Shown: one piece after another, positions 9,893 through 33,666 of the stretch
Position numbering within the stretch: position 1 is the first letter of the stretch
Layout: every line of letters begins with the position of its first letter
Sequence record: MZ475895.1
DNA length: 64,000 nt
Direction: 5' to 3' (one strand)
The notes under the pieces: model-generated
The model's database searches: none
What the model saw: only the letters and a program-made list of their open reading frames with translations
What the model was told of the DNA's origin: nothing
Made by a program: the position numbers and the translations under genes

Positions 9893-10438
9893 ATGAAACA
9901 TCCTCAGCGCGTTGCTCACTTAGAGCATTGGTTGGAGGCGGGTCGCGCCGCTTTCACCATGGGTGTGCGTACACCAAATAAAGATGGCGTGGAGCTGCTT
10001 GCTATTTTCCGTGCTGTGTCTCGTGGTACAAAAGACCAATGTGCTGCATCAATCGCAAAGCAAACGGCAGAACTGATTGAAGACATTGAACGCGATGTGC
10101 CTGCCTTCAAAGTCATTCGTCGTCGCTTCCGCAAAGAGTTTTATCCAGACTACAACATACCTGCAGAAGTCGAGCTGTATGTTGCGCTTCTGGCAGAGAC
10201 GTTCGGTGACATTGTGCAGACCATGACGTACCTGCATCTTCGTCGCTGTGTCGATACTAAGGACCTGTTGCTTAACTGGCTGCCAAATGGGTATCCAGCT
10301 AAAGACGCTATGGGTCTCCTGTGGAACTTACAGAAAGTGCCTACCGAGAACGAGTTCATGTTCACAGGAAATGCGGTAGACTGCATACAATCTGTAAATG
10401 ACCTATACAACAAAATGTATAAGACAGGAGACAAGTAA
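9893..10438 (+). CDS. hypothetical protein
   Basis: 181-aa ORF with RBS. Confidence 0.7.
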   Translation: MKHPQRVAHLEHWLEAGRAAFTMGVRTPNKDGVELLAIFRAVSRGTKDQCAASIAKQTAELIEDIERDVPAFKVIRRRFRKEFYPDYNIPAEVELYVALLAETFGDIVQTMTYLHLRRCVDTKDLLLNWLPNGYPAKDAMGLLWNLQKVPTENEFMFTGNAVDCIQSVNDLYNKMYKTGDK

Positions 10439-11025
10439 TGGATTTATCTTCTATCGGCTATGCAAACAAACCATTTCGCGTTATCCCTGTTACTTCTGGT
10501 AATATCGTAACTGATTTCATTGCCGGAAAGTTTCAGGTGATTGGCGTTGAGTGTAATGCTCGTGGTGCGTATGGCTCGCCGATTCAACAAAGCATTGCAC
10601 GCCGCTTCCCTGACGTGTTGCAGAAGATGAACGCGCTCGACTACGACCACCAGAACTTCATGGGCAGCACGTTGATGCATCCTGTGCAGACTCAGCACCG
10701 TCGTCGTTTGTTTGTCGCTAACATGTTCCTTGCACGCGGCTTTGGGTTAGGCCAGAATCGCACTCAAAGTGAAGGTCCGATTAATCGTTTCAGTGAACGA
10801 CACTTGACGCAAGCCTTCGACAGTCTTGTTGATAGCTGTGCATCACTCAACATTAGTCTGGACCGCCAGATTGCTGTGCAGCGTTTCTACGGCGGTCTTG
10901 GTGGGGTATCTTGGGAAGAAGTATGTGAAGTGCTGGACGCTATTTGCGCCAAGCATAAATTCAACATGCTGGCTTATCTGCCTAAGAACTATAACTCTAA
11001 CTTTGTGCGGGGTTCTGCGCAATAA
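10438..11025 (+). CDS. macrodomain (ADP-ribose-binding/processing) protein, divergent
   Basis: IGVECNARGAYGSPIQQSIARRFP, VANMF, FYGGLGGVSWEEV match the phage macro (Appr-1-p) pattern. Confidence 0.7.
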   Translation: MDLSSIGYANKPFRVIPVTSGNIVTDFIAGKFQVIGVECNARGAYGSPIQQSIARRFPDVLQKMNALDYDHQNFMGSTLMHPVQTQHRRRLFVANMFLARGFGLGQNRTQSEGPINRFSERHLTQAFDSLVDSCASLNISLDRQIAVQRFYGGLGGVSWEEVCEVLDAICAKHKFNMLAYLPKNYNSNFVRGSAQ

Positions 11026-11378: not shown

Positions 11379-12101
11379 ATGATTACAGCGAAACACATTG
11401 AAAGCCGTTTAAGAACAATAGACTATACCAAGCCTAATCCTGATCGGGAAATGCTTGTGGCGCTTGTGTCTGATGGACGTTCTCGTATTTTGAAGACAGC
11501 ACAGATCGATGGTCTGTGTCCGCTGTCTGATAAGTATTTTGAGTTCTGCCTCAGCCAGGTCGGCTCTTTCTGCACGGCAGGTTACAACGCTGTGGAGATT
11601 GCAATGTCTATCGGTGTTCAGCCTATCTATGTCGCAGCGCACATCCATCTGCATGGCTGCGATTGGGCACACAGACTTTTAGGCTTGAAGCGATTTGCTG
11701 CGCTTGCTCGTGGTCCACATACTGTGTGGTCATCAGGTGAAGCGTGGTTCGCTTTGGGTGAATGCCAGCGCCGCTCTAAGCTGCACTATGGCACTTCAAG
11801 CGGGCAGGAAGCATTGCGCAAAGCAATCCAAAAAGCAGAGATGCCTTATGTGCTTGCTGCCGCTGTCACACATCCCCATCGTCTCATGAGCATTCTCCGT
11901 CCGCGTGATGGGCTGTTGTATCGTGACCCACGTATTGAGAAGACGCTGAAACAACGTGAGAAAGCCGCTGCTGATGCAAAGGCGGAAGGCCGTTCTGTGC
12001 TAACGACTGAGAAGCGTAGCGAGTACGGCGACATGGGTAAGTTGTTTAACGGTCATCTGTCGCGTGCTGACAAGACAGGTAACCCTCGCGTAACTGAATA
12101 A
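11379..12101 (+). CDS. hypothetical protein
   Basis: 240-aa ORF. Confidence 0.7.
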   Translation: MITAKHIESRLRTIDYTKPNPDREMLVALVSDGRSRILKTAQIDGLCPLSDKYFEFCLSQVGSFCTAGYNAVEIAMSIGVQPIYVAAHIHLHGCDWAHRLLGLKRFAALARGPHTVWSSGEAWFALGECQRRSKLHYGTSSGQEALRKAIQKAEMPYVLAAAVTHPHRLMSILRPRDGLLYRDPRIEKTLKQREKAAADAKAEGRSVLTTEKRSEYGDMGKLFNGHLSRADKTGNPRVTE

Positions 12102-12111
12102 GGAACGTATC

Positions 12112-12492
12112 GTGGATAAGAATGAAATCACGTTGTTGATTGACAGTCTGAACGGCAATCGCAATTTCCCAATCGATCCAGAAGCTGCAATAGGCATGAC
12201 CCTTGAACAGTTCATCAAAACCAATGGGAACTTTGTGTTTCTCATGAATGATGCGCTCGTCCGTGACATGGTAAGTAAGCAGCATGAGTACGATCCAAAC
12301 TTCGTACCAGCTACTACTCTCGACGAAATCAACAACGGTCTTATGGGAACTTTCCACGGCGTCAATGTGTACAGCACTTGGGTGTATCGTGCTCCTGGGG
12401 ATCTGCCTGCGGAAGCGAAGCCTCGTTTCGGTATGTATCGCGCCGACCTAAAACAAATCTTCCCGTTGACTAAACATTTTATCGTAAAGTAA
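12112..12492 (+). CDS. hypothetical protein
   Basis: 126 aa, AAGGA RBS, GTG start. Confidence 0.7.
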   Translation: MDKNEITLLIDSLNGNRNFPIDPEAAIGMTLEQFIKTNGNFVFLMNDALVRDMVSKQHEYDPNFVPATTLDEINNGLMGTFHGVNVYSTWVYRAPGDLPAEAKPRFGMYRADLKQIFPLTKHFIVK

Positions 12493-12504
12493 AACTGTTT
12501 ACGG

Positions 12505-12510
12505 TAATTT
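12505..12510 (+). promoter_or_regulatory. TAATTT intergenic motif upstream of cmoA-like gene
   Basis: 34 nt upstream of ATG 12544. Confidence 0.45.
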
Positions 12511-12543
12511 CTGAAGGTCAATCAGAATAACGGAATCCTCATC

Positions 12544-13314
12544 ATGAGCAATATCGATACCACAATGCCTGAAGGCAAATGGGAGTTCAATGAGTCGGTT
12601 GCTTGCGTGTTTGATAACATGCTGCAAAACTCTATCCCGTCTTATGGCCGTATGCGTGACCTGACGTATCGTCTGGGTCGTCGCTTCGTAACCCCGGGTT
12701 CAGCTATCGTCGATCTCGGTGCTTCACTCGGCCGAGCTATCGAGCCGTTTGCAAAAGAGTTCGGCAAGTATGACTACCATCATGCTGCTGACGCTCCTGG
12801 CGAAGACTACGAAACAGGCAATCACTATAGCCTGTTCGAAGTAGCGCCTGCGATGCGTGAACGTCTGGTGCAGAATGAAGTGCTCAACTCAGTGAATGCC
12901 AAACTGGAAAGTGAATCGCTGGTAGATACTGACACGTTTATGTTCGACGGTCAGGTGCATTGCTCGTTGATTCTGAGTGTGCTAACTCTCCAGTTCACGC
13001 CGATTGAACATCGTCAACACATTCTGGAAAACGTGTACAACTCACTGCAACCAGGCGGCGCATTCATCCTCGTTGAGAAGGTGTTAGGCGATAACAACTA
13101 TCTCGACAAAATGCTGGTGGACACCTACTACCAAATGAAAGGCGGTAACGGTTACAGCGCCGAGTCGATTGCGACTAAACGTAAGTCACTGGAAGGTGTA
13201 CTCGTTCCTGTTAAAGCAGCGTGGAACGAAGAACTGTTGCGTAAAGCAGGCTTCGGTCAGGTAGAAAGTTTCTATCGCGACCTGAACTTCGCAGGATGGA
13301 TTGCTATTAAGTAA
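12544..13314 (+). CDS. cmoA: CmoA-like carboxy-S-adenosyl-L-methionine synthase
   Basis: WEFNESVACVFDNMLQNSIPSY, IVDLGASLG, TLQF, LQPGGAFILVEK, KRKSLEGVL (conserved Arg), LLRKAGF..NFAGWIAIK. Confidence 0.88.
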   Translation: MSNIDTTMPEGKWEFNESVACVFDNMLQNSIPSYGRMRDLTYRLGRRFVTPGSAIVDLGASLGRAIEPFAKEFGKYDYHHAADAPGEDYETGNHYSLFEVAPAMRERLVQNEVLNSVNAKLESESLVDTDTFMFDGQVHCSLILSVLTLQFTPIEHRQHILENVYNSLQPGGAFILVEKVLGDNNYLDKMLVDTYYQMKGGNGYSAESIATKRKSLEGVLVPVKAAWNEELLRKAGFGQVESFYRDLNFAGWIAIK

Positions 13315-13323
13315 GGAAATACT

Positions 13324-14586
13324 ATGAAAGTAAACGGGCGTATCTTAGCTATCGTCCCACACAAGACAATGCAAGACCGTACCAAGTCGGGTGTGGGTTC
13401 GTACATTGATGGACTAGAGGCATACGGCTTCTGCGACTTTATCACGGACGGAGAGAACAGCTCCGTTGCGAAAAGTCAGTGGTTCACTTACGGTGATACT
13501 ACTCTCAGTGACGGTTATAAGATAGGGCATATCCAGAGCGAGTTGCTGATTGCACTTGAGCGCTTGCCTTACCGTGCGATTATTTGCAGCACGTATGAGG
13601 CGATTGAAGCCTGCGTGTCTCTGGGACTGCCAAAGATTATGCCCGTTTACTATCGCACGCACAACAGCTTTTTGCTCACACAAGATCTCAAGGGTCTTGG
13701 TGCAGAGAAGATCCACCGTGCGTTGTTGCAAGCACGCGTCACAGGGCTGCGCATCCTTGCTAACTGTGATTCGACTGCGATCAATCTTGCTGAGCGCTAT
13801 AAGACGCCAGCACACGTTGCCTACAACTCGTTCTCGGTGCCTGACTACAACCCACCAGCTCGGCGTGTTCCCCAGCTGTTGATTATCTGTCGCTATGAGA
13901 AGGTCAAGCGCACGTTGTTTGCTGCGCGTATTGCTGCTGCATCAGGATTACCCGTTCGTGTTATGACAGGCAGTGATCGTCAAGTACGCAATTGGGAGAA
14001 AGAGCTGGCTGAGGCGGGTGTCAAAGAATACACCGTCGTCAGTGGCCTTAGTGGTAAACAGAAACTCGAATTTATAGGCGCTTGCACAGTAGCCCTTTCT
14101 ACTGCGAGCGTTGAATCTTTTGCTAACGGTGTGCGTGAGTCTATCCCCTACTGTCCTACCTTTATCGTGCAAACATCCAAGTACGATTGGGCTAAGGACT
14201 ATACGCGCTTCTGTACTGCCGACAAGCATGTTCATATCAGAACTGTTGATCGCGTATCGGACCAAGCCGTAGCTGAAATCGGAAGTGAGATAGCGCGAGT
14301 TGCCACCACACGTTATCTGACAGGTCCGCAGCGTAAACAACTACTGACTGCTTGGGCAAAGCAAGTTGATCGTGGTTGGTCCGACTTTGTTCAGAAGGCT
14401 GTTGTTGACGATGACGGCAAGCCGCTGCGCACCGAGCTATATCAAGAACTGATCGACAAATCAGAAATCGATTGGTCACAAACGCCTACGCTAATGCGTA
14501 CTGTAAATGCGTTACATAAATGCCACGCTCGTTTGGGCCTGACATTTGATGGCACTAAAATCAAATATAAGAGGAAGCGCAAATGA
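13324..14586 (+). CDS. GT-B fold (GT4-like) glycosyltransferase
   Basis: YYRTHNS, ILANCDST, IICRYEKVKR, STASVESFANGVRES resembling E-x7-E donor-binding motif. Confidence 0.6.
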   Translation: MKVNGRILAIVPHKTMQDRTKSGVGSYIDGLEAYGFCDFITDGENSSVAKSQWFTYGDTTLSDGYKIGHIQSELLIALERLPYRAIICSTYEAIEACVSLGLPKIMPVYYRTHNSFLLTQDLKGLGAEKIHRALLQARVTGLRILANCDSTAINLAERYKTPAHVAYNSFSVPDYNPPARRVPQLLIICRYEKVKRTLFAARIAAASGLPVRVMTGSDRQVRNWEKELAEAGVKEYTVVSGLSGKQKLEFIGACTVALSTASVESFANGVRESIPYCPTFIVQTSKYDWAKDYTRFCTADKHVHIRTVDRVSDQAVAEIGSEIARVATTRYLTGPQRKQLLTAWAKQVDRGWSDFVQKAVVDDDGKPLRTELYQELIDKSEIDWSQTPTLMRTVNALHKCHARLGLTFDGTKIKYKRKRK

Positions 14587-15659
14587 GTGTTATCGGTGAT
14601 ATTTATAACATACCACAACCTTTCGCAATGTATGTCGGGAATTGTGAGACGCGTGCTCAAGCCAAAGTTGCTGCTGGTACAATCGAGTGGGCGCCAGAGA
14701 AAGTGTGCTGCACCGTAGATGATGGTAACAACCTGTTCCCCAACGTACCTTCAATCAACCCTGCTGACGTGCATAAGACAGATGCAGAAACTTTAGTGAT
14801 TGGCTGTGCACCTTTCGGCGGCCGCATTGACGAGCACATGGACAAAGCTATTCGTAGCGCTATCTATCGTGGACGCAACATTGCTGCTGCTATGCATACG
14901 CGCCTGGCGGATAATCCCGAATACGTTGAGCTGGCTGATCGCTACAACGTCAAGCTGTATGACTTCCGTCATCGTCCTGATGCGTACCCACTTGGTACCG
15001 GTGAGAAGCGTAGCGGTCTGCGTCTGTTAACTGTCGGTACTGATAGCTCCTGCGGCAAGAAGTTTACCACGCTATCTCTGTATCGTGAACTCAAGCGCAT
15101 CCACGCAGACACTGTGTTTTGCTCTACTGGGCAAACAGGCTTCCTGATTAGCGGTTGCGGTATCAACAACGACACGATTGTTGCTGACTTCCTCGCCGGT
15201 GCTGCTGAATCACTTTCGCCTGCTGGTCCTGCTGATCGTATCTATCTGATTGAAGGTCAAGGTGCTATCACTCACCCAGCATACACAGGCGGTAGCATGA
15301 GTCTGATTGCCGGCTCGCAGCCTGATCATCTCATCCTGTGCCACGCATGGAACCGTCAGAATCAGTTGGGCGTTAAGCGTAAGCCTGACCTTGATTTTGA
15401 GATGCGTGCTAATATTGAAGCGGCGCGTATTCACGGTCTCCACCCGACCTACATCGGTATCAGCATTAACTTCTCTGAGTGTGATTTGACACAGGACGAG
15501 CAAGATAAAATCCTGTACCAACTCGCATCAACGTATGAGATTCCCGTGTTCGACCCATCACAAGACACTTCTGTGTTGCGTGACCTCGCTCGTATGTTAG
15601 CAACTAAAGCCAAAGCAAGGAGCCTCGATGGCCAAGCATCCCCTGCGCAAGCTGTTTGA
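14583..15659 (+). CDS. DUF1611 / DgcN-family P-loop protein
   Basis: LVIGCAPFGG, GRNIAAAMH, LLTVGTDSSCGKKFTT, TGQTG, IEGQG, GSQPDHLILCH. Confidence 0.85.
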   Translation: MSVIGDIYNIPQPFAMYVGNCETRAQAKVAAGTIEWAPEKVCCTVDDGNNLFPNVPSINPADVHKTDAETLVIGCAPFGGRIDEHMDKAIRSAIYRGRNIAAAMHTRLADNPEYVELADRYNVKLYDFRHRPDAYPLGTGEKRSGLRLLTVGTDSSCGKKFTTLSLYRELKRIHADTVFCSTGQTGFLISGCGINNDTIVADFLAGAAESLSPAGPADRIYLIEGQGAITHPAYTGGSMSLIAGSQPDHLILCHAWNRQNQLGVKRKPDLDFEMRANIEAARIHGLHPTYIGISINFSECDLTQDEQDKILYQLASTYEIPVFDPSQDTSVLRDLARMLATKAKARSLDGQASPAQAV

Positions 15660-16503
15660 ACAGCATGTGAAAAAAGAAGTGAAAGCAGACAAGGTAGCTG
15701 TGCTGCTTTCATCTGGCCTCGATGGTTTGGTCAGTGCGTTAGCTGCACACGATCTCGGTAAGAAGGTGCACGCCTTCACTTTCCAAATGGGTGACAACCC
15801 TAGCTTTGACAGTCGCCACGCACAGATTGTTGCGCAGAAGATGGGGTGGGAGTTCACTCTCGTTAAAGTTCCCACCAGCGTGTCTGCTATCGCATTAGCG
15901 TGGCGCGTGCTGCATTCCAAGTATCGCTGCATTAAGAAGCGTGACTACGAGTGTGCGTACCCTATGGTCTATTGCTACAAGGCAATCAAAGACGCTGGGT
16001 ACAAGTATGTGCTAAGCGGGCTGGTGGCCGATGGTTACTTCCTGTATAACCGTAACACGCATATTCAGAAAATCAGCGGGCCACACTCTGACGCTCAGAA
16101 GTATCATGAGTTCCGTACTCAATACTTTAGTCCGTGGCTTAAACACGGTAAGAAGTCTCTGGGCGTTGACGGGTATAACCCGAGCGGCATGTTGCAGCAT
16201 GAGATGTTGTGCGATAACTTCGGCCTGATTCACGTTAACCCGTGGATGCAAAACAAGGTGTTTGACTACTTCATCAAATACACTTGGCAGGAGTTGAATC
16301 AGCCTAAGCAGAAGATGCCACTAACCGAAGCGTGGGCAGAACACATTGCTCTTGTTGGTCATCGTCCACACAGGGGCTATCAGACAGAAGCCAAAGTGCC
16401 TGAATACTTTGAGCATCTGATCGAGAACCCTGAGATTAACTTCAACGGGCGCAAGCGCATCATGGACGTGGCACGCGACTGGTCCAAACGAGAGCCTGAA
16501 TAA
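15628..16503 (+). CDS. asparagine-synthetase-like ATP-dependent amide ligase (no glutaminase domain)
   Basis: PP-loop VLLSSGLDG, VLSGLVADGYF (cf. SGEGADELFGGY), NPW, KMPL; 291 aa. Confidence 0.75.
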   Translation: MAKHPLRKLFEQHVKKEVKADKVAVLLSSGLDGLVSALAAHDLGKKVHAFTFQMGDNPSFDSRHAQIVAQKMGWEFTLVKVPTSVSAIALAWRVLHSKYRCIKKRDYECAYPMVYCYKAIKDAGYKYVLSGLVADGYFLYNRNTHIQKISGPHSDAQKYHEFRTQYFSPWLKHGKKSLGVDGYNPSGMLQHEMLCDNFGLIHVNPWMQNKVFDYFIKYTWQELNQPKQKMPLTEAWAEHIALVGHRPHRGYQTEAKVPEYFEHLIENPEINFNGRKRIMDVARDWSKREPE

Positions 16504-16758
16504 ATGCATCCTGTTATCACAGACTTTCTTGGGCCTATCGTTAAGCGGCTGGGCTTATTCACTGCTATATTCGGTTTTGTCGGCGTGCTGCTGTCTGTGA
16601 TCGCAGTGCTTGTGTGCCGCCCAGAAGTCCTTCAATACGAATACGATACTGTAAATAGACTTCGTACTGAGGGTATTGTATTCTTGGGTAAAGGCGCTCT
16701 CGTTTACATCGTAGGCGAGATACTTGAAGGCACGTTCAAGTGGAGAAAAGATGATTAA
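16504..16758 (+). CDS. small membrane protein
   Basis: Two hydrophobic segments. Confidence 0.6.
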   Translation: MHPVITDFLGPIVKRLGLFTAIFGFVGVLLSVIAVLVCRPEVLQYEYDTVNRLRTEGIVFLGKGALVYIVGEILEGTFKWRKDD

Positions 16759-17014
16759 CAAATTCGTGATGAAGAAGACTCCGACCATTGAAGCCTGTCA
16801 GTGGAATGGAGAGAACAAGGAAGAGATTGAAGCCTTCCTTGGCGATAGCGGATTCGTTGTTGGGCGTTACGTGCAGATTGGTGTTCTGGATAAATACCAG
16901 AAGCCAACTATTGCTAACGTAAGCGTAGGCAACTATGTGATCAAGCGCGATGATGGTAAGTTCTATGCCATTACTGCGCAAGATCTGTTTGAGAATTATG
17001 TATTAGCAGATTGA
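16751..17014 (+). CDS. conserved-type small phage protein
   Basis: KKTPTIEACQWNGEN...GNYVIK...FENY pattern; GGAG RBS. Confidence 0.7.
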   Translation: MINKFVMKKTPTIEACQWNGENKEEIEAFLGDSGFVVGRYVQIGVLDKYQKPTIANVSVGNYVIKRDDGKFYAITAQDLFENYVLAD

Positions 17015-17021
17015 GGCCATA

Positions 17022-17474
17022 ATGAATCTGTTTTCTATTTTAAAACAGCAAGTGAAGAAATCCCTGACGACCGAAGCAACGCTTGAGCCAGAAGTGCGCA
17101 AACACTTTGACTGGCGTTTCAGTGTTGACGTCAAAGGTCTGATGTACATTGTAGGCAAGACAGGCGCTAACACCTGCTTCTATCTTGAGCCAGGTCACGT
17201 TGAGCCTACTGCCTGCTATCCTGATGAACTGCTTGCGAAGATTGATAGCTGGGGCGCTGCGAAGTACGTGTCCTACGCTGTCTACTTCAAGAAGTTCAGT
17301 AGCCCTGTAGCTGAGAACATCAAGACGCTTGAGCAGGCCAAGACAGGCAAGCCTAAAGCGTTTAAGAAAGGCTACTTTATCTGTGGCGTAACACCGAAAG
17401 GTAAGCGCGTCAAACTGTGTCGTCTGCACAACAGCCTAAGCGGTATGCAGTGGGTTGATGTAGACCAGAAGTAA
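17022..17474 (+). CDS. hypothetical protein
   Basis: 150 aa, GAGG RBS. Confidence 0.7.
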   Translation: MNLFSILKQQVKKSLTTEATLEPEVRKHFDWRFSVDVKGLMYIVGKTGANTCFYLEPGHVEPTACYPDELLAKIDSWGAAKYVSYAVYFKKFSSPVAENIKTLEQAKTGKPKAFKKGYFICGVTPKGKRVKLCRLHNSLSGMQWVDVDQK

Positions 17475-19130: not shown

Positions 19131-19532
19131 ATGAGACCTGAAAACATTTCACGCACCTATCGCGTCGGTCAGTCTGACCTGGAGAAAGCACACAATGTCT
19201 GCGGAGAGAACAATGTAACACTCTCAGATGTGGTGCGCAGATACATCGAAAGAATCGTACTGACTGAGGGTGAGTTCCTTATGAACGAGCGTAAGCACGT
19301 ACCTGAGTCCCAACTGAATGTACGCCTGCCCTTTTATATTGCGCACTCCTTTGCATCTGTGTGTAAGTCTCGTGGTACGTTAGCCTCTAAAACCATTCTC
19401 AACTTTGTCAAGAATATTGCTCTTTCCGGGACTATCCCTGAGGAGTTAAAGTATGCTTCTGACGCAGAGTTGCGTGCCTATATTACCTCAGAGCGCTCTC
19501 GCCTCGATGCACTGGAAGCAAAACTCAAATGA
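19131..19532 (+). CDS. tandem ribbon-helix-helix (RelB/CopG-like) DNA-binding protein
   Basis: Two repeats: TYRV..DLEKA..VC....TLSDVVRRYI and LNVRLP..I..SF..VC..RG..ASKTILNFV. Confidence 0.55.
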   Translation: MRPENISRTYRVGQSDLEKAHNVCGENNVTLSDVVRRYIERIVLTEGEFLMNERKHVPESQLNVRLPFYIAHSFASVCKSRGTLASKTILNFVKNIALSGTIPEELKYASDAELRAYITSERSRLDALEAKLK

Positions 19533-20368
19533 TTCTAACTAGTCCCATTCGCTATCAGGGTAACAAGCGCACTCTGATGCCTCTTATTCTCGAACATGCG
19601 CCTGTGAAGGATTGCGTTCGCATGATAGACGCATTCGGTGGTAGTGGTACTGTTGCGCTCAACATGCCTCACAAGTTTCGCATCTACAATGAACTGAGCA
19701 CGCCTGTGTTTGAGATCGTCCAGTTGCTTGCGCATCAAGACCCGAAGAAAACATTGGGTCAGATTAAGCGCATCGTCAAGCGTTTTTGTCTAACCAATAG
19801 CAGCCAAGACAACTACGACATGTTCCGCGCGTATGTTCAGAAGAAGCCGAGTCCGTTGTTCCATTACATCGCACACAGGCACGCACGCTCTAACATGCTG
19901 CGCTTCAACCAGAAAGGCATCTACAACGTGCCGTTCGGTGAGCGTGGCCTGATTGGAAAGTTCGATCAGCTTGAGCAGGAGCTGGTGCAGTTCCATGAAC
20001 GTATGCAGAACACGCACATCACCAACATGCGCTATAACCTGTTGCTCAAGTCTGTGTCAAAGCATATCGGACCGAACACGTTCATTTACTTTGACCCTCC
20101 ATATCTTGCTAGTGGTGCAATGCAATACGGTAAGTGGACTGAGCACAACGAACGCAACCTGCTGTCCGTACTTGAGTATCTGAATCGTCAAGGCTGCCCG
20201 TGGATGTTGAGCAACGTTCTCCAACATCGGCACCACACGAACGACCTGCTCAAGCGCTGGCTAAAGAAACACGCAACGACTGTCATCTATCCTGACAAGT
20301 CTTATTCAATGGCCAACTCTCATTCTGATAGTCACAGCACTATCGAGATTCTGGCAATGAACTACTGA
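19529..20368 (+). CDS. dam: DNA adenine methyltransferase (Dam/T4-Dam family)
   Basis: SPIRYQGNK, DAFGGSG, RFNQKG.YNVPFG, FIYFDPPY. Confidence 0.92.
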   Translation: MILTSPIRYQGNKRTLMPLILEHAPVKDCVRMIDAFGGSGTVALNMPHKFRIYNELSTPVFEIVQLLAHQDPKKTLGQIKRIVKRFCLTNSSQDNYDMFRAYVQKKPSPLFHYIAHRHARSNMLRFNQKGIYNVPFGERGLIGKFDQLEQELVQFHERMQNTHITNMRYNLLLKSVSKHIGPNTFIYFDPPYLASGAMQYGKWTEHNERNLLSVLEYLNRQGCPWMLSNVLQHRHHTNDLLKRWLKKHATTVIYPDKSYSMANSHSDSHSTIEILAMNY

Positions 20369-30830: not shown

Positions 30831-31529
30831 ATGGCAAAAATTGCTAAAGCAAAGGAAGGGAAAAAGAAAAGCAACCCTATGTTGATTGACCTGAAAAAGT
30901 TCAAGTCAGTTAAACAGCTTAAGGGTGCGAAGTACAACCCTCGTTTCATTACAGACAGCCGACTGAGAGCGCTCGAAGGTTCTTTGGGCAGCTTCGGTGA
31001 TTTGTCTGGCGTGGTGTTCAACAACAGCGTAGACAGTGGCGTGCTGATCTCAGGCCACCAGCGTCTCAAGTCGATTGAGAAGTGGGACTCGCGCATTGAG
31101 ATTCAGCAAACGTCTGACAAGTACGGCACGGTAGCGCTGGGTTATATCCATGCCACCAGCGCCAAAGGTAAAACGATCAGCATCCCACTGCGTATCGTTA
31201 ACTGGTCAGATAAGAAAGTGGAGTTTGCTGCTAACATTGCTGCGAATGCCCACGGCGGTGAGTTCGATAACAAAAAGCTCGCGTCACTTGTCGAGAAGCT
31301 GGACCTGACTACAATCAAGCCAGCACTTATCGGGCTTGACCCGTTAGAGATTCGCGGCCTGCAACAGACGCTGAGCAAACAAGCTATCGTCGAGCAGGAA
31401 AAGCGTGTTGGTAAAACAACAGGCAAAATGAACGGCAGCACCGGCGAGTTCAAAGAGTACACGACTGATGAAGTTGGTACTGCGCTGACCTGCACCTGCC
31501 CACGTTGTGGCTTTAAGTTCGAGGGATAA
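30831..31529 (+). CDS. ParB/Srx N-terminal-domain protein with C-terminal zinc ribbon
   Basis: KYNPRFI...SLGSFG...VVFN...ISGHQRL; NIAAN..GGEFD..KL; CTCPRCGFKF. Confidence 0.85.
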   Translation: MAKIAKAKEGKKKSNPMLIDLKKFKSVKQLKGAKYNPRFITDSRLRALEGSLGSFGDLSGVVFNNSVDSGVLISGHQRLKSIEKWDSRIEIQQTSDKYGTVALGYIHATSAKGKTISIPLRIVNWSDKKVEFAANIAANAHGGEFDNKKLASLVEKLDLTTIKPALIGLDPLEIRGLQQTLSKQAIVEQEKRVGKTTGKMNGSTGEFKEYTTDEVGTALTCTCPRCGFKFEG

Positions 31530-31530
31530 C

Positions 31531-33666
31531 ATGATCATCAAGCCGCCTACAATGAAAGAGATTAATAAGCTGCCCAAGCCTTGGTCAGGTATGAGTTTCT
31601 TTGCAGGTTGCGGTGGTTCATCTACCGGTCACAAGATGGCCGGTATTAACATCCTACTGAGCAACGAGTTCGTGGACGCGGCTCGTGAATCGTATGAAGC
31701 GAACCATCCAACAACCAAAGTGTTGCCCCACGATATTCGTCGTCTTGACCCGAAAAAGCTGCTTAGCTATTGCGGCCTGAGCCAAGGCGAACTGGACTTG
31801 CTTGACGGCAGTCCTCCGTGCTTTACCGAAGACACGTTCATTCATACTGACACTGGTATGAAGTTCATCACTGATATGCGCATCGGTGACTTCGCTATGA
31901 CCTCTGTTGGTAAGTATCATCCTGTGTATGACACGATGGTGCGCCCGTATGACGGTCAGATGCACAGAATTGAAACGCTGCTCGGTCAGAACAATGCAAC
32001 ACCTGAGCATCCATTCTTTGTTCGTCGTCAGAATGAAGAAACTGGCGGGTACAGTGAGCCGTTCTGGTGTGACGCTAAAGATGTGCAGGAAGGCGATTTG
32101 TTGGGTACGCCTCGTGTTACGCCTGACATGGGTGAAGCACACACGCATGAGATTATCTCGTCGTTGACTGCGCAGCTTGTGCGTTGGATTGCATTGCCTG
32201 AGTTTTGGTGGCTGATTGGTCACTGGTGCAATCGCGGTGCAATCGATAAGATTCGTGGTGTCGATGTTATTCAGTTCACCTCGATGACAGCGATGGAAAA
32301 CTCGCTGGTGGAACAAGCGTTCGACGTGCTCAAGTTAAGCAGCATCAACAGCGCTTCGTCCGACATGGGCGTTCACCGTAAGACCGTCCGTGTTGTTATG
32401 GACACAGACCTGTTGCTGTTCTTGCGTATGTTTATCGCACAGGGCAAGAAGTCTATGTCCCGCCGTATGCCAGGCATGATCTTCCATCTGGCCAAAGAGC
32501 TGAAACAGCAATTCATTCTCGGCTATCTGGGTCGTGATTACGTCACAGCAATGGGCGTTGGTCATGCGTTAGAGGCTGACTCAAAGCGCTTCCTCGTTGA
32601 GATGAATTACCTGTGCTGCTCTGCGTTCAACAGACCGCTGTTCGATGCAATGTTGTTCACTGACTTGCATTACGGCAGTCCTATGTTACCGCCGAGTCGC
32701 TTCATCACCAAAGAGCACATTGGCTTCCTGTTCTTACAAGAAGAGGTTAATTTCTTCTTTGAGTTCGAGCCGGAAGACCCGCATCTGTGGGTAGAAGTGA
32801 TTGAGAACTTTACGCACCATGAAACGTGCAACGTCTACAACTTCTCAGTCAGTGTTGATGAGACGTATGTTGCTAACGGTATGGTCGTGCATAACTGCAA
32901 AGGGTTCTCGACTGCGGGTGTGAAAGAAGACGGCTGGGGCAAAGAGGTTAAGTACAGCGGCAACAAGTATCAGCAAGTCGATGACCTGTTCGATCAGTAT
33001 TGCCGTATGCTCAAGCACATGCAGCCTAAAACGTTCACTGCGGAAAACGTTAGTGGCCTCGTTAAAGGTGCGTCGAAGGGTTACTTCATTGAAATCATGA
33101 AGACCTTTGATCAGCTAGGCTACTATGTGCGAGCACCGTTGCTTAATGCTGCGTGGCTCGGTGTGCCTCAGTCGCGTGAGCGTATCATCTTTATGGGTGT
33201 GCGCAAAGACGTGGCTAAAGCACTCGGCTATAAGACTGCGTTGACTGCTGTGCCTGATGTAACACCTCAATCAAGCATGGCGTTCCTTGCAGATGCACTG
33301 CCGAACATTCGTCGGTATAAAGGTACGGAGCGTGACATTATCAAGTATCTGCCTGCTGTTAACGGGCCGATGCCTACGATTACCGCTGCTGACGCTATCG
33401 CATACGAAACAGCACGCTTCTCCTCTGCTGGCTTCATTGAAGACGACAAAGGGCACAGACGCAAGCTGACGATTGACGAACTCAAAGTTGTATCAGGCAT
33501 GCCTAGTGATTACGTGCTCACAGGTAAGTTTGAAGAACAATGGGAACGTCTCGGTCGTGTGTGCGTACCTGCAATGACGTGTGCAGCGGCAAGCGCGTTG
33601 ATACGCCATGTGCTTGAGCCGTACGCGAAGCTGCGTAAAAAGAAACCTGGGGATCGTTTTCGTTAA
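31531..33666 (+). CDS. C5-cytosine DNA methyltransferase homologue, intein-containing; probable carboxymethyltransferase
   Basis: FAGCGG (I), NEF (II), DI (III), GSPP/CKGFS (IV), ENV (VI), PQSRER (VIII), motif X reads RLGRVCVP; GAGG RBS before ATG 31531. Confidence 0.9.
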   Translation: MIIKPPTMKEINKLPKPWSGMSFFAGCGGSSTGHKMAGINILLSNEFVDAARESYEANHPTTKVLPHDIRRLDPKKLLSYCGLSQGELDLLDGSPPCFTEDTFIHTDTGMKFITDMRIGDFAMTSVGKYHPVYDTMVRPYDGQMHRIETLLGQNNATPEHPFFVRRQNEETGGYSEPFWCDAKDVQEGDLLGTPRVTPDMGEAHTHEIISSLTAQLVRWIALPEFWWLIGHWCNRGAIDKIRGVDVIQFTSMTAMENSLVEQAFDVLKLSSINSASSDMGVHRKTVRVVMDTDLLLFLRMFIAQGKKSMSRRMPGMIFHLAKELKQQFILGYLGRDYVTAMGVGHALEADSKRFLVEMNYLCCSAFNRPLFDAMLFTDLHYGSPMLPPSRFITKEHIGFLFLQEEVNFFFEFEPEDPHLWVEVIENFTHHETCNVYNFSVSVDETYVANGMVVHNCKGFSTAGVKEDGWGKEVKYSGNKYQQVDDLFDQYCRMLKHMQPKTFTAENVSGLVKGASKGYFIEIMKTFDQLGYYVRAPLLNAAWLGVPQSRERIIFMGVRKDVAKALGYKTALTAVPDVTPQSSMAFLADALPNIRRYKGTERDIIKYLPAVNGPMPTITAADAIAYETARFSSAGFIEDDKGHRRKLTIDELKVVSGMPSDYVLTGKFEEQWERLGRVCVPAMTCAAASALIRHVLEPYAKLRKKKPGDRFR
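31819..32895 (+). mobile_element. intein (359 aa) with degenerate LAGLIDADG-like region, inserted before the catalytic Cys
   Basis: CFTEDTFI start, ATPEHPF block B, VYNFSV..YVANGMVVHN end, +1 Cys. Confidence 0.93.

Follow-up and report, generated by a model that had tools for sequence, protein, structure and literature searches.

A CmoY-type amide ligase with a constant DgcN-like partner, predicted to act on carboxymethylated cytosine in the DNA of Erwinia jumbo phages

The gene considered here lies in a stretch of 64,000 nucleotides (nt) from sequence record MZ475895.1, called the window throughout, and encodes a protein of 291 amino acids (aa) that is best understood as a member of the CmoY family. 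The protein would be an amide ligase dependent on adenosine triphosphate (ATP) that acts on phage DNA after CmoA and CmoX, and we give this explanation as a whole a probability of roughly 0.78. Membership in the CmoY family, with DNA containing 5-carboxymethylcytosine (5cxmC) as the substrate, appears likely when judged from the protein sequences and the gene content. Positions 12000-17000 of the window are 100% identical to the Erwinia amylovora jumbo phages pEa_SNUABM_14, 45 and 46, close relatives of which show 96-97% identity over the same interval; pEa_SNUABM_3 and the Dickeya phage AD1, both classed as Alexandravirus, are more distant. Absences at the level of the whole genome (glutaminase, CmoB, alanine racemase, second asparagine synthase) were judged on the nearest complete genome, that of pEa_SNUABM_7 (G001), whose ligase is 99% identical to that of the window.

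The CmoY family was described in December 2025 by Yang et al. (Nat Commun 17:281; PMC12783734). In the Synechococcus phage S-B43, CmoA provides carboxy-S-adenosylmethionine (carboxy-SAM), CmoX, a homologue of the C5-methyltransferases, forms 5cxmC in DNA, and SpCmoY, a 271-aa asparagine-synthetase homologue without an amidase domain, joins glycine to 5cxmC in a reaction that depends on ATP and was seen in Escherichia coli as well as in vitro, with genomic DNA and with DNA of 110 base pairs (PMC12783734). Published [M+H]+ values are 286.1 for the deoxynucleoside 5cxmdC and 343.1 for its amide with glycine. The same study defines the carboxymethyltransferases by an SPPC motif together with an arginine in motif X. 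Among its clusters of ligases, one bears a glutaminase and is predicted to use ammonia; the others probably take other amines, the sole characterised one adding glycine (PMC12783734). We settled the identity of the SpCmoY gene by comparing the coordinates of the S-B43 locus with the source data of that study. The window ligase aligns with SpCmoY over its full length, at 33% identity across 275 aa and with a pairwise E value of 6e-50. It consists of the asparagine-synthetase domain only, and both a CmoA and a CmoX homologue, the latter with SPPC and the motif-X arginine, are encoded along with it.

The CmoA homologue, 2.3 kb upstream of the ligase gene, shares 28% identity with SpCmoA (E 3e-25). 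The CmoX homologue is interrupted by an intein, and the halves that flank the insert are 55% and 31% identical to SpCmoX. The intein begins with Cys105 right behind the sequence GSPP and ends with HN immediately ahead of Cys464 (GSPP|C...HN|CKGF), so the residue that follows the intein is the catalytic cysteine of SPPC and its excision restores the motif; carboxymethylation would therefore depend on protein splicing. Motif X of the enzyme reads ERLGR, its arginine being R684 (nt 33556-33558). In related Erwinia and Yersinia jumbo phages, the match to SpCmoX is likewise divided, with about 2 kb between its two parts. No CmoB was found in the pEa_SNUABM_7 genome, the same as in S-B43. CmoA (as methyltransferase), an asparagine synthase and a DNA-cytosine methyltransferase occur together in phages AD1 and Y3, and their relative JA11 has none of the three (PMC6143709).

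A first-pass annotation of the window, made from the letters alone, had singled out the ligase gene by its SSGLDG and SGxxAD-GYF motifs, its length of 291 aa and its missing glutaminase domain; the open reading frame (ORF), the Pfam match and a scan of the pEa_SNUABM_7 genome bear out each of these points. The ORF (15628-16503, plus strand) is open throughout. Its Shine-Dalgarno sequence sits within the 3' end of the preceding gene, with which it overlaps by 32 nt, and the N-terminus MAKHPLRKLF is kept among homologues. The protein begins with MAKHP and lacks an N-terminal nucleophile (Ntn) glutaminase domain with its Cys1. Residues 6-138 match Pfam Asn_synthase with 51.4 bits (cut-off 21; E 1.7e-13). 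The alignment starts at position 2 of the profile, which leaves no room for an N-terminal glutaminase domain. The pEa_SNUABM_7 genome encodes no GATase_7 domain and just the one Asn_synthase domain. On the model for glutamine-hydrolysing AsnB (TIGR01536), the ligase scores 57.1 bits, the equivalog cut-off being 267.1. Within the PP-loop, S28, G30 and D32 do not vary in either of the CmoY clades considered below, and S29 is specific to the clade of the window ligase (Gly in the SpCmoY clade). The second motif extends to LSGLVADGYF (residues 129-138, nt 16012-16041), with G131, A134 and D135 invariant, and in the NQPKQK loop N224, P226, Q228 and K229 are invariant in all clades. The match of motifs and domain is far beyond chance.

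A search of the PDB by sequence returned noise only, and the structural relatives emerged from a fold search. The AlphaFold2 (AF2) model of the ligase, built with 18 homologues, is a single domain predicted with high confidence (predicted local distance difference test, pLDDT, 94.7; predicted TM score, pTM, 0.91). Compared with the PDB by Foldseek, it finds its best counterparts in E. coli AsnB (E 3.6e-10, TMq 0.67-0.70), human ASNS, beta-lactam synthetase and carbapenam synthetase; a TMq of 0.43 is not exceeded by TtuA, NcsA, LarE, NadE or argininosuccinate synthetase. A profile comparison with the synthetase domain of AsnB had been proposed as a check, and hhalign now aligns the ligase to E. 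coli AsnB with 97% probability, placing SSGLDG on SGGLDS, SGLVAD on SGEGSD and K229 on the lysine of EKHILR. The position of AsnB Glu348 is taken by leucine, and the invariant His248 lies opposite the residue that we take to be Lys449 of AsnB. Both are present in the active SpCmoY and are thus traits of the family, not defects. A better match to a QueC-type or other tRNA-related PP-loop family had been named as the outcome that would speak against an asparagine-synthetase-like enzyme, and the comparison came out the other way, with 51 bits for Asn_synthase against 21 for QueC and with Foldseek favouring AsnB over TtuA, LarE and NadE, for which the TM is 0.41 or less. QueC was rejected on both of its models (21.4 against 22 bits in Pfam; 23.2 against 150.3 bits for TIGR00364), the alignment covering residues 23-83 only, and the NadE, LarE, ThiI and MnmA profiles all stay below threshold on the ligase.

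Taken together, these data suggest the following course of reaction. CmoA would generate carboxy-SAM, from which the spliced CmoX would place a carboxymethyl group on C5 of DNA cytosines. The PP-loop of the ligase would then adenylate the carboxyl group of 5cxmC in double-stranded DNA, giving 5cxmC-AMP and pyrophosphate, and an external amine would attack this adenylate to yield the 5cxmC amide. We ascribe the adenylation and the amine attack to the window ligase because its homologue SpCmoY shows them in vivo and in vitro, and homology to SpCmoY together with gene context lends support to the scheme as a whole. The first-pass annotation had proposed just this, ATP-dependent activation of 5cxmC on DNA and coupling to an external amine. 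The proposal is supported by the kinship with SpCmoY and by the CmoA and CmoX genes in the same DNA; the idea is probably right, and it was anticipated by the published CmoY family.

In a maximum-likelihood tree, the window ligase forms a clade with 16 metagenomic relatives, to which it is 46-99% identical (support 97/96). This clade, here called type A, is sister to the one that contains SpCmoY (support 95/92), and the ligases of Rivsvirus and of the Pseudomonas phage PaBG make up a third. We compared the 17 type-A sequences with 57 non-identical sequences of the SpCmoY clade from IMG/VR. An insertion of 13-17 aa is present in all 17 and corresponds to a gap in all 57; in the hhalign alignment it lies directly ahead of the segment that matches the substrate-binding helix of AsnB. 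A relative of 35% identity (P0021), situated in a plain CmoY-CmoX-CmoA cassette, is without the insertion. The two clades share a catalytic core that comprises S28, G30, D32, D61, C101, K103, K104, E108, C109, P112, G131, A134 and D135 in the first half of the protein and R163, Y166, N224, P226, Q228, K229, H248, R275, R277, D280 and D284 further on, with K103, K104, R163, K229, H248, R275 and R277 as its basic members. Against this common core stand 12 fixed differences (type A/SpCmoY clade: S29/G, M54/L, F60/Y, H64/K, R105/T, D106/H, M113/F, R142/K, S186/A, R246/K, Y251/L, T253/L) and an isoelectric point (pI) of about 9.3 for type-A proteins versus 5.8 for SpCmoY.

Since type A retains all the basic residues that do not vary in the clade using glycine, the amine is most likely an alpha-amino acid whose carboxylate is free, an assignment that we regard as somewhat better than even. 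The changed positions and the insertion, for their part, suggest a different pocket for the side chain. The amine is probably not glycine, given the insertion, the fixed polar substitutions, the constant DgcN-like partner described next and the racemase-like and GT-B genes that often accompany it, and the base that results in the DNA probably differs from the known adduct with glycine.

The partner is a DgcN-like protein of the DUF1611 family, encoded directly upstream of the ligase in the gene that overlaps it. It matches the NCBIfam model DgcN with an E value of 4.9e-85, its 285 bits falling short of the 480 set for an equivalog, and aligns with PDB entry 7xrj (6.8e-50), the P-loop region being conserved. 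DgcN reportedly takes D-glutamate as its substrate and acetylates it from acetyl-CoA, as a 2023 study by Yu et al. in ISME J is said to have found. By its NCBIfam name DgcN is an N-acetyltransferase, a function given also in PMC12363236. Across 85 loci, a DUF1611 gene accompanies the ligase in all 12 of type A and in none of the 73 of the SpCmoY clade (Fisher 7.6e-15, to be read with the kinship of the loci, which represent roughly eight lineages). Of the records in the phage collection, 34 contain a type-A ligase and 34 carry this DUF1611 gene, and the two sets coincide exactly; none was found in the 21 records with distant ligases. The literature searched showed no link between DUF1611 or DgcN and phage DNA modification, and the text of PMC12783734 makes no mention of DUF1611, Erwinia or an intein; the type-A branch with its constant partner is not covered by that work.

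Several observations weigh against a plain transfer of the SpCmoY reaction to the window ligase. The CmoX gene is 15 kb away from that of the ligase, and its product needs protein splicing for activity. Identity to SpCmoY is just 33%, and the 12 fixed differences, the insertion beside the predicted substrate pocket and the shift in pI set the two enzymes apart. A simple one-enzyme mechanism also leaves the constant DgcN-like partner unexplained. We retain the reading of the protein as a CmoY-family ligase on 5cxmC-DNA, and the alternatives that follow concern mostly what is joined to the base and by which protein.

The island around the ligase gene holds further genes that bear on this question. 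A protein of 420 aa, encoded upstream of the DgcN-like gene, has no match in Pfam or PHROG, and its model is matched in Foldseek by SenB, by a glycosyltransferase of phage HY126 and by BshA. We regard it as a glycosyltransferase-like protein of the GT-B fold and a variable accessory; 8 of the 12 type-A loci contain its gene, and AD1 and Alexandra lack it. As a candidate for CmoX, the same ORF was ruled out by its lack of similarity to SpCmoX and by its GT-B fold. Several lineages have a gene for an alanine-racemase-like pyridoxal phosphate (PLP) protein, 300-325 aa long, between the DgcN-like and the ligase gene; in the phage type of the window, judged on the pEa_SNUABM_7 genome, there is none. 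Islands of the Alexandravirus type come in three forms: CmoA-DgcN-CmoY in AD1 and Alexandra, the same with the 420-aa protein in the window, and the same with the racemase-like protein in pEa_SNUABM_3. Independent metagenomic contigs have the DgcN-like and ligase genes within compact cmo operons of other arrangements, namely CmoX-DgcN-CmoY-CmoA within 3.7 kb (L012), CmoX-CmoA-GT-DgcN-racemase-like-CmoY (L013) and GT-DgcN-racemase-like-CmoY-CmoA (L014). Each of the three encodes a protein 41-45% identical to the window CmoA; the methyltransferases of L012 and L013 carry SPPC and ERLGR, and that of L014 was found by similarity to SpCmoX only. At the syntenic site of the Rivsvirus pEa_SNUABM_5 (L010:4051-5744), CmoA is followed directly by a ligase of only 24% identity, with neither a DgcN-like nor a GT gene. 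The ligase module is thus exchangeable, and the Rivsvirus site suggests that modules were swapped and that a different amine is used there.

The position of the GT-B and DgcN-like genes between cmoA and cmoY, and the modular make-up of the island with its three architectures among related phages, would fit a pathway of ligation followed by tailoring, in which the type-A ligase adds an amino acid or a diamine and the two other proteins decorate the product, the DgcN-like one by N-acetylation and the GT-B protein by glycosylation. We consider this possible in a tentative sense. Once an amino acid is joined through its alpha-amine, only a diamino acid would still have a free amine to be N-acetylated, and the GT-B gene is missing in phages of the AD1 and Alexandra type, whereas the DgcN-like gene is constant.

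The DgcN-like and racemase-like partners also hint at chemistry with D-amino acids. That the amine is itself a D-amino acid is a conjecture we would not favour, if one to be kept in view. Since a D-amino-acid amide of 5cxmC shares the skeleton of the DgcN product, it is conceivable that the DgcN-like protein delivers or transfers the amine, or acts as a later tailor. The fullest form of this idea, in which the type-A ligase and the DgcN-like protein act as a pair to form the amide and so place a D-amino acid on carboxymethylcytosine, with the GT-B protein glycosylating the result in some phages, strikes us as speculative and rather improbable. A stricter division of labour, which we judge unlikely, would have the CmoY-type protein only adenylate 5cxmC and the DgcN-like protein bind the D-amino acid and carry out the acyl transfer, to give an N-(cytosin-5-ylacetyl)-D-amino acid. 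This product would be a structural analogue of N-acetyl-D-glutamate, the product of DgcN; the strict co-occurrence of the two genes, the insertion adjoining the pocket and the racemase-like gene between them in several lineages are in keeping with such a split, and the overlap of the two genes suggests translational coupling. It is countered by SpCmoY, which works without a partner, by type A itself, which keeps the catalytic loop of the ligase together with its conserved basic residues, and by the known acyl donor of DgcN, which is acetyl-CoA and not an acyl-adenylate on DNA.

Free ammonia as the nucleophile, with 5-carbamoylmethylcytosine as the product, is very improbable. Asparagine synthetases can use free ammonia, and the published glutaminase-bearing cluster of ligases is predicted to take ammonia (PMC12783734), but the pEa_SNUABM_7 genome has no glutaminase, the nearest characterised relative uses glycine, and the conserved arginines fit the binding of a carboxylate. 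Ammonia derived from glutamine would not be the amine, since the ligase is without a glutaminase domain. That the protein is a metabolic asparagine-synthetase-like or a QueC-type PP-loop enzyme working on a small molecule or on tRNA can practically be dismissed: the sub-threshold QueC, NadE and LarE matches and the role of bacterial CmoA in tRNA modification might suggest it, but those matches are far weaker than that to Asn_synthase and have low TM scores in Foldseek, CmoB was not found in the pEa_SNUABM_7 genome, and the ligase gene is linked with CmoX in several independent contigs.

Beyond these genes, a protein of 150 aa encoded downstream of the ligase recurs in cmo clusters. Small ORFs within the clusters of PaBG, L013 and L014 share 33-35% identity with it (E about 1e-22) and an ORF of Rivsvirus 49%, and L012 has a homologue as well; among the loci of the SpCmoY clade none was found, and a search of the protein atlas with this ORF returned no match. 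It may be a further component of the pathway. The homologue in PaBG is placed between CmoA and the ligase. In AD1 and pEa_SNUABM_3, a 206-aa protein (compared at L002:6872-7492), 25% identical to the protein behind the Rivsvirus ligase, follows right behind the ligase; in the window, positions 16504-17014 show no trace of it and contain just a pair of short ORFs, one of 84 aa and one of 96 aa. Elsewhere in this early region, positions 10438-11025 match PHROG 335 (phosphatase), the AD1 counterpart being annotated as O-acetyl-ADP-ribose deacetylase (macro domain), and positions 19529-20368 encode a Dam-type N6-adenine DNA methyltransferase (PF02086, 2.1e-25). PADLOC gave no match for the three proteins of the island. 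Coordinates are collected in Table 1.

Table 1. Features of the cmo genes and their surroundings (positions in the window unless a locus is named)
Feature	Position	Strand	Basis
CmoA homologue (carboxy-SAM synthase), 256 aa	12544..13314	+	TIGR00740 CmoA 1.2e-39; phrog_4752 6e-78
GT-B fold glycosyltransferase-like protein, 420 aa, variable accessory	13324..14586	+	AF2 pLDDT 76; Foldseek
DgcN-like DUF1611 protein, 358 aa, constant type-A partner	14583..15659	+	PF07755 1.4e-46; PF17396
Shine-Dalgarno AAGGAG of the ligase gene, 5 nt ahead of ATG	15617..15622	+	sequence read
CmoY-type (type A) glutaminase-less asparagine-synthetase-like amide ligase (predicted), 291 aa	15628..16503	+	Pfam, SpCmoY homology, AF2, Foldseek, tree
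PP-loop SSGLDG, residues 28-33, ATP pyrophosphatase motif	15709..15726	+	hhalign onto AsnB SGGLDS
SGLVADGYF, residues 130-138, counterpart of AsnB SGEGSDEVF	16015..16041	+	hhalign
Clade-specific insertion, about residues 168-183, SPWLKHGKKSLGVDGY	16129..16176	+	alignment of type-A and SpCmoY-clade sequences
NQPKQK loop, residues 224-229, invariant Lys229	16297..16314	+	alignments; hhalign
150-aa protein recurring in cmo clusters	17022..17474	+	phrog_23597
CmoX homologue (DNA cytosine C5-carboxymethyltransferase), intein-interrupted	31507..33666	+	PF00145 6.3e-38 in two pieces; Intein_splicing and Hint
Intein in CmoX, C105-N463, 359 aa	31819..32895	+	+1 residue is the catalytic Cys of CmoX
Alanine-racemase-like genes	L005:6324-7259 (pEa_SNUABM_3); L006:7099-8001; L013:7055-8032; L014:2869-3780

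Our analysis has importance in pointing to a distinct branch of these ligases in cultured jumbo phages of Erwinia and Dickeya that are relevant for biocontrol. The cytosine that they carry is probably a new hypermodified one, and its chemical identity is accessible by mass spectrometry on available phages. The enzymes are a possible source of new catalysts for attaching groups to DNA, and the "hypothetical proteins" of these loci can now receive names. Should the two-protein route to a D-amino-acid amide turn out to be true, it would constitute a new hypermodified base and the first D-amino acid in DNA, attached with the help of an enzyme recruited from D-amino-acid catabolism.

Among known systems, QueC and other PP-loop enzymes have the ATP pyrophosphatase core of the PP-loop in common with the window ligase, and only the first 60 residues align. 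Beta-lactam synthetase (1mc1) and carbapenam synthetase (1q19) have the AsnB fold and, without recourse to glutamine, join an acyl-adenylate to an amine other than ammonia in an amide bond; they differ in that they keep a vestigial N-terminal domain and close an intramolecular lactam on a small molecule, and their identity to the ligase is 14-18%. AsnB (1ct9) and human ASNS provide the best structural match, with aligned PP-loop and SG..AD motifs and with acyl-adenylate chemistry, whereas the ligase lacks the Ntn glutaminase and its acyl substrate would be a DNA base instead of aspartate. Within the CmoY-type ligases, the glutaminase-bearing cluster (A0A7T0Q3R0; PMC12783734) and the Rivsvirus- and PaBG-type enzymes are only about 24% identical to the window ligase and have neither the insertion nor a DgcN-like partner nor the R-K-R motif at the C-terminus. 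A glutaminase domain is present in one cluster, and the Rivsvirus type is the one encoded at the site syntenic with that of the window ligase in sister jumbo phages of Erwinia. The nearest relation is to SpCmoY (A0A514ABJ0). The two enzymes, 291 and 271 aa long, each consist of a single ATP-binding domain of the asparagine-synthetase type without a glutaminase, share the PP-loop, the C-x-KK-x3-EC-x2-P and G-x2-AD motifs, the N-x-P-x-QK loop, the invariant histidine and the C-terminal R-x-R-x2-D, and are co-encoded with CmoA and CmoX. The window ligase is distinguished by its separate clade, its insertion, SSG in place of SGG, Tyr and Thr in place of two leucines at positions 251 and 253, and Asp in place of His at position 106. 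Type-A genes are always preceded by a DgcN-like gene and those of the SpCmoY clade never are, and the CmoX of the window is distant and split by an intein.

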